From NCBI RefSeq assembly GCF_006345805.1, contig NC_042997.1:110980001-111044000 (forward strand): DNA of 64,000 nucleotides. The letters are read 5' to 3'. Under the pieces are notes generated by a model. It had not been told where the DNA came from. It saw only the letters and a list, made by a program, of their open reading frames with translations, and ran no database searches. This DNA comes from Octopus sinensis. Taxonomy: Eukaryota. Below, piece by piece: positions 53,101 to 56,100 of this stretch. Numbering within the stretch: position 1 is the first letter of the stretch; each line of letters begins with the position of its first letter. The position numbers and the translations under genes were made by a program.

Positions 53101-56100
53101 GTTCTATATTAATGTGAAACTGATTGGAGGCGAGAGAGAGAAACATTGGTACTTTAAAGCCAAAACTGGTAATTCCAGAACATTTTATACACAAAAAGGA
53201 AAAAAAAAAGGGGACAGCAAGTGTTTGTTGCCGCTGCTGCTGCTGCTGCTAATGACAACAATGGTGGCATCTGAATTTGCAGTGAAGGGCTTCCTCTCAT
53301 CAAAGCAGGCTGTGATATGAAGGATTGGAAAGCATATGACAGCCACTTTGATGAAAGGAGATCCCAGCCATCGCTGTATGGTCTCATGTTTGAGCTCATC
53401 AAAGCTGGCTGTGATATGGTTTAGTGAGAACACATCACCACCACTTTGGTGACTTAAAGCAGAGAGCAGAGCCCCCGACAACACAAGAACGGAGGGGGCT
53501 ATCTGGCTGAGTTATCTCCAACAAGTCATTGTCTGAAAAGGGAATCCTACAGCTACAGAAGGCACCGCTTTTGGGGACGATCAATGATTTAAGTGGTCCT
53601 GGGATATATCAAGAGAACATAGCACAATTGAAAAAAATACGTCAAACAATAACTAAAACAATTTTTTTTTTTTTTTTTATAATTTCAGTTCCCCAACATT
53701 TAATTTTTTATTTGAAGAATATTTCTGAAAATACATTGGTCTATGAAAACTAAATGACTTCTAAATGATAAAAATGAGGAATATTAAATTTCTAAGACAA
53801 AGTAAACAAGTAAATTGGAGGTGAAATAACCCAAGTGTAGCTCATCAAAGCTAGCTGTGATATGTCAGAAAGTCAGCATATCCCAGCTCTTTAATGAGTT
53901 ACAATAGGGTCGGAACATCAAAACAAATTCAACATTTATTGACATAAACAACATCTTAATCCAGCAAGAACATTAAATTTCCCTCGTCAACTAAAATGGT
54001 GAGAAGTGTGCCAAAATAAACCAAGTCCCAGCTCATCAAAGCTAGCTGTGATATGTCATAATAGCAGCATATCCCAGTTATTTGATGAGTTACAACTAAG
54101 CCACTAGAATTCAGGGTGCCAGATACAAAAGCATGAAGAAAAACATGGAAAGGGACATAAAGTTGGGAAAAAGGAGAGAGAAAATATCCAGGAGGGTTAA
54201 CCAGGTTGCTGAGAACAACCAAGTTGAAGCTCATCAAAGCTAGCTGTGATACGTCATTATAACCGCATATCCCAGTTATTTGATGAGATACAACATGGTC
54301 AATAGATACACGCAGAGAACTATGTCTAATTCAGAAATGCCAATCGGAGGAGGGAAACAAAATAAATTAATCTAACCATTTATTCTTGCCAAACACTTCA
54401 CACAAAATTAGGGGAAAAAAAAAGTCATGTAAATTAAATACAAAAAAAACCTCACACAACTAACAGGTTTATAAAAAACAAAAAGGAACATCTCAAGCGA
54501 CATGTGGATTTGTGATGCTTTCAACAGTGCCCTAGCTCATCAAAGCTAGCTGTGATACGTCATTTTGTTAGCATATCCCAGCTCTTTGATGAGATACAAC
54601 ACAGTCACAACACTAAGGATATTGGTTAAAAAAAAAAGCTGAAGAAAGCTATTGCCACACAAAAAACAGGAAAAAAAAAAAAAGGTTTAAAGCTAGCGGA
54701 GCAGGGAAGCAACCTACAGCCAGCTCATCAAAGCTGGCTGTGAGACGTTCAAATATCTATATATCACAGTCCTTTGATGAGCTGTAACAAGGTTAGGAGA
54801 GAATAGGCAATGTTAAAAAGGTTTTAAAAAATGGCTGTTGTCAATCCCAAGGCGTTGGAGCACCAAGTATATTACTGATCCAAGCAGGCTGTGATATGAA
54901 AATCCAATTTAGCAGCACATTCACAACCACTTGGTCAGTAATAGACATGGCAGACAAAACAATAAAAAAAAATCTTCGTTTCTATCCTGAAAACTCAAAA
55001 TCTGCAAATATCCAAGTGGGGGTAAGGGGCGCACCAAACTAGCAGTGATGACTGGCAGGAGACAAGGCTCATCAAAGCTGGCTGTGATAGGCCCTATAGA
55101 TTTACTATGACATCCAGCATTGATGCCTTTGTAACCCGTTTCTACATCAAGCTCTGTTGCACTGAAAGGAATAATGGAGAGGGGCAGGGGAATATAACTG
55201 AAGTAGTTGTTCAACTAAAATTCAATTTATTTTTTGGTTACATAATTAAATATAATTAGACAAACTAGTTTTGCTTTACCTGCAGTTTCAATTCATATTT
55301 CATCAGCAGCAAGAATGTAAAGTGATCCGCTCGAAAGACAGGGTAGTAAGAAGTTTATAAAATAACATCTCACTACCCGTGTCTTTCAAGCCAAACACAA
55401 TTGTTATAGTGGAAAAAATAAAAAGGGGACGAGGCTGGAAACTGAAAAAAGGGCAAAACTACAACAGGGGGGAGAGTAGTAAGTTAGTGCATGTTTCGTA
55501 AAGTAATAGGTAGTTGAAAGTGTCCACTTACGGCAGCAGCTTCTGTGCGAAATTCATCTGGACTTGTTGGACAAGCAAGGTCCAACAATACTTGAACCAC
55601 CTGGTCTTCAACATCGACTGAAATAAAACATTAACATGCTAAAGGACACATGATCACCCAAAATATTTAGAAAGGATTCAACAATTTAAAATATTTTTAA
55701 TGAGTTTCACAAAATCTATTTACATCCTACTGCTGACTGTGGAGGAATGAATAATGCCAGCCATTCTCTGTAAAGAAGGAAGCAAATACTTGAATGCAAT
55801 CCATACCAATAGCTATGATGGAAGCTTCGACATTGGATTGAAATCTTTTGAGTTAAGTTTGACCTAACAATAATATATAAAAGGCATTTCATCCATCAGC
55901 TTTCCAATTTAGTGAATTCCATATCAATGTCCATTTATTTTTTTAATGCTGGCATGTGGTCAGTTTGGGAGAATCTGATGATCCCAAGGACTGCACATCA
56001 TGCTCCATTGTCTGCCGACATGGTTTCTACAGCTGGGTGCCTCTCTAATGCCAAACATTTTTTCAGAGTGTACTGGGTGCTTCTCTTGTGCCACCAACAC

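Follow-up and report, generated by a model that had tools for sequence, protein, structure and literature searches.

Host gene and intronic microRNA cluster

The window, the whole 64,000-nt stretch of Octopus sinensis DNA analysed here, carries on its minus strand a PPP4R1-like gene with a microRNA cluster in one of its introns. The host gene was identified from a spliced peptide, built by joining the minus-strand exons 57000-56858, 56758-56698, 55617-55532 and 51286-51182, which matched NCBI and UniRef proteins named serine/threonine-protein phosphatase 4 regulatory subunit 1-like. This agrees with a preliminary description of the DNA, in which PPP4R1 had been named as the host. Further PPP4R1-like exons, extending to about 18.6 kb in the window, were found by tblastn with an arthropod-like orthologue as query. 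The microRNA-bearing intron spans 55531-51287 (4,245 nt, minus strand), and a host intron of 99 nt (56857-56759) lies immediately upstream. In four degenerate spliced copies of PPP4R1 (P0002, P0003, P0007 and P0012), the canonical junction is present without an insert. The flanking exons and the hairpins are listed below, with a slash marking the splice boundary in a motif.

55617-55532, minus strand: PPP4R1-like coding exon with a phase 0 end, encoding ..VDVEDQVVQVLLDLACPTSPDEFRTEAAA, assigned by homology to PPP4R1-like proteins
55531-55526, minus strand: GTAAGT of the host donor GCC/GTAAGT, directly after exon 55617-55532
51286-51182, minus strand: next PPP4R1-like exon, encoding LMCKMAPLLGREMTERLFLARFTQMCSDPLFHVRR, preceded by ttcaacag
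55394-55325, minus strand: mir-71 precursor hairpin (Rfam RF00832, 66.5 bits, gathering score 50, full model coverage)
55388-55366, minus strand: miR-71-5p arm TGAAAGACACGGGTAGTGAGATG, with a conserved 5p seed and an unusual C at position 10
54941-54870, 54784-54719, 54596-54531, 54290-54225, 54092-54027, 53901-53836, 53456-53390 and 53358-53291, minus strand: eight mir-2 hairpins (Rfam)
55130-55063, minus strand: ninth, mir-2-like hairpin, below threshold and the nearest of them to the candidate exon

The covariance match above the gathering score, together with the conserved 5p seed, identifies the hairpin at 55394-55325 as a mir-71 precursor. It begins 137 nt into the 4,245-nt intron and dominates the fold of the region (z-score -7.0). 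The C at position 10 of miR-71-5p is unique among 62 mir-71 loci, and the variant in the window, ACACGGG, was not found in genome contigs, viral contigs or 59 metagenome loci.

The mir-71 and mir-2 hairpins lie on the sense strand between coding exons of PPP4R1, and the arrangement of mir-71 followed by mir-2 within this gene is also present in three other loci (L001, L003 and L067). In C. elegans, the PPP4R1 orthologue is ppfr-1; mir-71 and mir-2 reside in its introns and are expressed from intronic promoters of their own (PMC3410857, PMC2835999). The C. elegans ppfr-1 locus and the protostome miR-71/miR-2 cluster share with the window the same families, host gene and strand. The two C. elegans microRNAs occupy different introns, whereas a single 4.2-kb intron of the window holds mir-71 and nine mir-2-type hairpins. 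The uncoupling of mir-71 from mir-2 in C. elegans is brought about by their own promoters, with no exon involved (PMC2835999). Because the nematode pair also lies in ppfr-1 introns, the link between these microRNAs and their host gene is old and already known. What is established at the locus is this mir-71/mir-2 cluster, ancient and previously known, in an intron of PPP4R1.

Architecture of the candidate exon around mir-71

The preliminary description had outlined a candidate exon around mir-71, delimited by a branch point, three alternative acceptor AGs and one donor. All of these signals were read directly from the minus strand and were where the description had placed them. They are given here with the associated stop codons, the predicted junctions and a nearby hexamer.

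55489-55483, minus strand: branch-point-like motif CACTAAC, branch A at 55484, 42 nt into the intron
55476-55411, minus strand: pyrimidine-rich tract of about 65 nt, carrying all three candidate acceptor AGs
55460-55459, minus strand: candidate acceptor 1, AG, closing a 73-nt mini-intron, 25 nt from the branch A
55444-55442, minus strand: candidate acceptor 2, CAG
55437-55435, minus strand: candidate acceptor 3, CAG
55282-55274, minus strand: donor-like CAG/GTAAAG, with the exon end at 55280 and GT at 55279-55278
55305-55303, minus strand: in-frame stop TGA for acceptors 1 and 3
55375-55373, minus strand: in-frame stop TAG for acceptor 2, within miR-71-5p
55231-55226, minus strand: AATAAA hexamer, a possible poly(A) signal, 48 nt past the donor-like GT
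55532>55458, 55532>55441 or 55532>55434: predicted upstream junctions, exon end ...GAAGCTGCTGCC joined to TTTTGCCCTTTT, TTTCCAGCCTCG or CCTCGTCCCCTT
55280>51286: predicted downstream junction, ...TTGAAACTGCAG joined to TTGATGTGCAAAATGG

Acceptors 1, 2 and 3 would give candidate exons of 179, 162 and 155 nt, respectively, two of which are also frame-shifting. The Rfam hairpin coordinates confirm that an exon of 155-179 nt encloses the whole mir-71 hairpin, with a spacing of 40-64 nt to the acceptors and 45 nt to the donor, and that no mir-2 hairpin lies within it. The in-frame stop predicted for each acceptor choice is likewise present. The TGA lies 23 nt from the exon end and 128 nt from the next junction, with at least eight further exons downstream, and thus stands more than about 50 nt before a later exon junction, as a stop would in nearly any pseudo-exon. 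These stops are uninformative, since almost any random AT-rich sequence 155-179 nt long would hold one. A mini-intron of 73-97 nt is plausible, since the 99-nt host intron indicates that short introns are spliced here. The chance expectation for an AATAAA within 100 nt is about 7%, and chance copies are common in the AT-rich DNA of this region.

Strength of the splice signals and chance expectation

Sites were scored with an approximate position-weight matrix, which serves as a yardstick only; the reference was a set of real sites from the host gene, 11 donors and 12 acceptors. On this matrix, the candidate donor scored 7.98 (real donors 3.3-12.4, median about 7), and the three candidate acceptors scored 9.45, 8.31 and 10.72 (real acceptors 1.4-9.4). 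The donor, which had been described as good, and the acceptors are therefore of real-exon grade on a crude matrix, being equal to or above most host sites. [quoted passage not shown] The scores of the embedded acceptors are inflated, because the pyrimidine tract of about 65 nt makes any AG inside it score well.

Within the 4,245-nt intron, CAG/GTAAAG is the sole donor scoring at least 7. Donors scoring at least 5.4 number 2 in this intron, compared with a mean of 14.9 in equal-size windows and 9.6 +/- 2.9 in dinucleotide shuffles. By simple motif counts, GTRAG occurs 4 times (7.1 expected) and GGTRA 2 times (9.4 expected). The donor depletion of the intron is measure-dependent, strong on the matrix and weak to moderate by simple motifs.

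Random 70-nt elements of the window were bracketed equally well or better, within at most 110 nt on each side, in 0.6-0.8% of cases, the thresholds being the candidate's own scores, fixed after the fact. For an intron carrying ten hairpins, the probability of finding one bracketed by chance rises to about 6-8% at these thresholds, and to 20-28% when the thresholds are set at the median of real sites. The bracketing of mir-71 is thus partly more than chance. Pseudo-exons of equal grade were detected at seven sense-strand loci of the window, including three real exons, and at six antisense loci; such pairs are therefore about equally likely to be false or true. Three of the equal-grade sense-strand loci are non-exon.

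Composition and structure of the candidate exon

Purines make up 39% of the candidate exon overall and 23% of the 64 nt before the hairpin (55458-55395), compared with 42-61% in the 11 real exons, all of which lie above the candidate. Pyrimidines account for 77% of the 75 nt upstream of mir-71, which is within the top 4% of the local background, and the upstream side of CAG/GTAAAG is purine-rich. The composition of the candidate exon is intron-like and pyrimidine-rich, which weighs somewhat against selection for an exon.

An apparent long-range duplex joining the acceptor region to the donor region was discarded. Formed by UAGUUUUGC/GCAAAACUA and CAGUUUC/GAAACUG, it has an energy of -21.9 kcal/mol, and 32% of genomic control pairs did as well or better.

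Comparison with other mir-71 loci

Scanning metagenomes for the miR-71 5p arm gave 59 loci, to which loci reached through protein matches were added; the comparison covered 62 mir-71 loci, counting the window. The same PPP4R1 exon end (..RTEA[AV]A/GT) was found upstream of miR-71 in 21 other loci, all non-cephalopod. These 21 loci represent about ten divergent types of exon peptide, and in all of them the start of mir-71 lies 70-566 nt past the same PPP4R1 donor; in most lineages the distance from the host 5' splice site is 70-170 nt. In L003, the intron is readable through to the next exon (cag/LMCRMAP).

The splice signals of the candidate exon were not found conserved in the orthologous introns of these 21 non-cephalopod loci. 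None of the 21 loci sharing the host exon has an acceptor and a donor both scoring at least 8 around mir-71. The nearest approach to the layout in the window is in L024, where a moderate pair (7.1 and 7.4) surrounds mir-71 with a 75-nt mini-intron. Among all 62 mir-71 loci, strong donors occur in 7, strong acceptors in 6 and both in 2 (the window and L025), which is about the chance rate. Flanks as strong as those of the window were observed in 1 of the 61 other loci.

The closest locus examined was L067, with a host exon 62% identical to that of the window, an intron of more than 5 kb, mir-71 and four mir-2 hairpins. A pyrimidine tract is present upstream of mir-71 in L067, but a usable AG or GT was not found there. 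Of the 21 orthologous loci, only L067 has CTAAC in the equivalent interval, and there the match falls short of significance; the other 20 lack it. An 11-mer, CACTAACTTAC, common to the window and L067 at a similar position, was rejected as a shared element, as 17% of shuffles align equally well. A contig from a close relative (L002) spans just two upstream host exons.

At the protein level, the mir-71 region and flanking sequence, translated in several frames and with the peptide across the junction of the host exon and the candidate exon included, had no match in a protein database that does not include this species. An exact look-up of three open reading frames of the window returned no record.

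Relation to known hairpin-containing exons and introns

The geometry of mir-71 was compared with that of known arrangements of hairpins and splice sites. In SO-miRNAs such as miR-34b (PMC3794580, PMC6097652), the hairpin overlaps a splice site, whereas mir-71 overlaps none, lying 40-64 nt off the acceptors and 45 nt off the donor. In SO-miRNA exons, alternative splicing is reported to be unchanged by Microprocessor processing (PMC6097652). A mirtron was also rejected, the mir-71 hairpin having ends without GT or AG and sitting within an intron of 4,245 nt. A recursive splice site was excluded as well, the acceptors being followed by TTTTGC, TTTCCA and CCTCGT, none of which is GTRAGT-like. The candidate fails the geometric definitions of all three classes, and its agreement with a poison exon extends to motif-level criteria only.

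Exon 5 of eIF4H (PMC4006729) and the hairpin exon of the DROSHA transcript itself (PMC5473138) resemble the candidate in that a hairpin lies in an alternative exon. In both, Drosha binding affects inclusion (PMC4006729, PMC5473138). Both are annotated coding exons, and neither hairpin is a canonical conserved microRNA; here, in contrast, the microRNA is deeply conserved and the exon is a prediction.

The candidate shares with NMD-coupled poison cassette exons, for example those of SR-protein genes, the cassette layout and an in-frame stop before later junctions. Strong conservation and observed junctions characterise classic poison exons, whereas the candidate exon, known here from its motifs, was not found conserved in the orthologous introns examined. 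Among the best matches of a targeted literature search, no case of a canonical microRNA inside a poison exon was found. Deep-intronic pseudo-exons provide the other comparison, with an AG/GT pair 50-250 nt apart, an intron-like composition and a stop by default. The candidate differs from these in enclosing a microRNA hairpin and in its unusually good branch-point match.

Interpretation of the AG/GT pair

The locus is probably an ordinary intronic pri-miRNA cluster in which a cryptic pseudo-exon stays silent or is spliced in at no more than noise level. The interval is the 5'-proximal part of the PPP4R1 intron hosting the ancient mir-71/mir-2 cluster, and mir-71 would be a conventional intronic hairpin, presumably released by the Microprocessor, either from the host pre-mRNA or from a transcript starting within the intron. 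The canonical mRNA joins 55532 to 51286. The cryptic pseudo-exon would arise from the AGs in the pyrimidine tract of about 65 nt and one donor-like CAG/GTAAAG located 45 nt past the hairpin, and its inclusion, if any, would give a premature stop, as with nearly any intronic pseudo-exon. The cryptic pseudo-exon is favoured because none of the 21 loci sharing the host has paired sites and the rates across the 62 loci are close to chance. It is further favoured because the purine content is below that of all 11 real exons, because equal-grade pairs occur on the antisense strand and at non-exon sense loci, and because the degenerate spliced PPP4R1 copies show the canonical junction free of an insert. 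It is also in line with C. elegans, where separate promoters, and not an exon, uncouple the two microRNAs. No selected regulatory role of the AG...GT pair is indicated, and we infer that the exon is not used.

The reading originally proposed, in which a regulated poison cassette exon of 155-179 nt surrounds mir-71, is unlikely. Its inclusion would send the PPP4R1 mRNA to NMD, compete with Drosha and uncouple miR-71 from miR-2 and from the host protein. Several observations in its favour also run counter to the cryptic pseudo-exon: the splice scores of real-exon grade with a consensus branch point, the low per-hairpin chance of such bracketing (0.6-0.8%), the CTAAC at an ideal distance from the first AG and the neighbouring 99-nt intron. 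The only strong donor lies in a donor-poor intron, and its survival there could reflect selection. A regulated exon would also be consistent with a stop that precedes many later exon junctions and with the comparable layout of L024 (75-nt mini-intron, sites 7.1 and 7.4). However, the signals are missing in all 21 orthologous introns examined, including that of the nearest locus, L067, and the sequence is pyrimidine-rich, unlike exons. The stop codon carries no information, and ten hairpins combined with post-hoc thresholds bring the chance of such an arrangement to about 6-8% or more. In addition, miR-71 is usually abundant, which implies efficient cropping, and efficient cropping would cut such an exon.

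Two further readings assign a function to the same signals in other ways. It is quite improbable that the exon is never spliced and that the motifs act as binding sites, with the tract bound by PTB- or TIA-type proteins and CAG/GTAAAG by U1 snRNP, leading to suppression of the AATAAA (telescripting) or to recruitment of the Microprocessor to mir-71. Such binding would fit the pyrimidine tract that recurs, with no AG or GT suited to splicing, in L067, L065 and a few other loci, the AATAAA at 55231-55226, and a donor-like motif that, judging from the U1 5' end, can pair with U1 over 7 contiguous bp. Against it, a general protostome pyrimidine tract upstream of mir-71 is not supported, the mean over 53 non-redundant loci being 0.50 vs 0.51; downstream donors are not enriched across loci, and a chance AATAAA is common in AT-rich DNA. 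Highly improbable is an alternative terminal exon, in which the 73-97-nt mini-intron is spliced and polyadenylation after the AATAAA yields a short non-coding transcript with mir-71 and without mir-2. The good acceptors about 210-230 nt ahead of the AATAAA would suit such an exon, as would a donor-like site that would compete with the AATAAA signal, but the proposal depends on a single hexamer expected by chance, and its layout was not found in other loci.

[quoted passage not shown]

A broader possibility, which we hold to be unlikely, is that the mir-71 hairpin was exonised in a cephalopod lineage as a premature-stop cassette exon of PPP4R1, so that the choice between splicing and Drosha sets miR-71, the mir-2 array and the host mRNA together. 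If true, one splicing decision would trade a conserved microRNA against its host mRNA and its cluster partners. [quoted passage not shown] To this the comparison usefully adds that about ten divergent protostome lineages have mir-71 in the same intron and near the same donor. More tentatively still, the conserved proximity of mir-71 to the 5' splice site of the host may reflect an old functional coupling of U1 or the spliceosome to mir-71 processing.

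Sequence of miR-71 and the neighbouring mir-2-like hairpin

The features of the PPP4R1-like miRNA intron (55531-51287, minus strand) that are considered here are as follows:

55388-55366, minus strand: miR-71-5p, TGAAAGACACGGG
55130-55063, minus strand: ninth mir-2-like hairpin, 40.4 bits, under the Rfam gathering score of 45.5
55531-55388, minus strand: span from the host donor to the start of the miR-71 5p arm

Position 10 of miR-71-5p (55379) is a C in the window, whereas a T was found in all of the other collected loci (61/61). The 3p arm reads ACCCTGTC in the window and ACCTTGTC in most other loci, so the change at position 10 may be paired. 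The mir-2 closest to mir-71 is the hairpin at 55130-55063, located approximately 150 nt beyond the donor-like site that ends the candidate exon at 55280.

Splice sites and complementary blocks around mir-71

Perfect complementary blocks of 9 bp and 7 bp, with an equal 8-nt spacing, were observed on either side of mir-71 (55461-55438 and 55289-55265, minus strand), covering both the candidate acceptor and the candidate donor. The duplex energy of these blocks was ordinary against genomic controls. According to the scoring matrix, no other 4.2-kb stretch of the window is as poor in donors as the miRNA intron, which has 2 sites versus ~15, a depletion that is less marked by simple motif counts. 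One possible explanation of this scarcity is that cryptic 5' splice sites are selected against in an intron carrying pri-miRNAs.

Other layouts were observed at two comparison loci. In L067, a tandem duplication (~70 bp, 4668-4807) covers the last part of the orthologous PPP4R1 exon, including its donor, so that the same 5' splice site occurs twice, 70 nt apart, and CACTAACTTAC...ATAAG|GTAAAT is located 60 nt 3' of the second copy. In L025, the sites flanking mir-71 are strong on both sides, with an acceptor scoring 11.9 and the donor TAG|GTGAGT scoring 10.9, and they delimit a 215-nt exon-like segment (7950-8170, numbered on the reverse complement of the locus as stored, with mir-71 on the plus strand). 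No PPP4R1 exon was found within 600 nt upstream of this mir-71.

Repeats and intron-less PPP4R1-like copies

Scattered copies of short interspersed repeats, probably SINE-like elements, were identified in introns of the window (56023-56095, 44116-44185 and 16639-16707), with several more ORF-like repeats elsewhere; their translations include motifs such as ...LDALPNANHS.... Separately, three comparison loci (L005, L006 and L007; proteins P0002, P0003, P0007 and P0012) encode intron-less, degenerate and partly frameshifted PPP4R1-like copies, ~58-76% identical to the window protein and containing the canonical exon junction. These look like processed pseudogenes from related molluscan or cephalopod sequencing runs.

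Position of mir-71 within the PPP4R1 intron

The same PPP4R1 intron houses mir-71, immediately 3' of the exon end ..RTEA[AV]A|GT, across approximately ten divergent exon-peptide types (the window and L001, L003, L004, L008, L009, L011, L013, L014, L018, L021, L023, L024, L031, L033, L038, L041, L047, L052, L062, L063 and L067). The distance from the donor to the start of miR-71-5p was 70-172 nt in 16 of the 22 loci, counting the window, and 332-566 nt in the remainder. The association of this intron position with the PPP4R1 host looks ancestral to protostomes, and the short distance to the 5' splice site may be important in itself.
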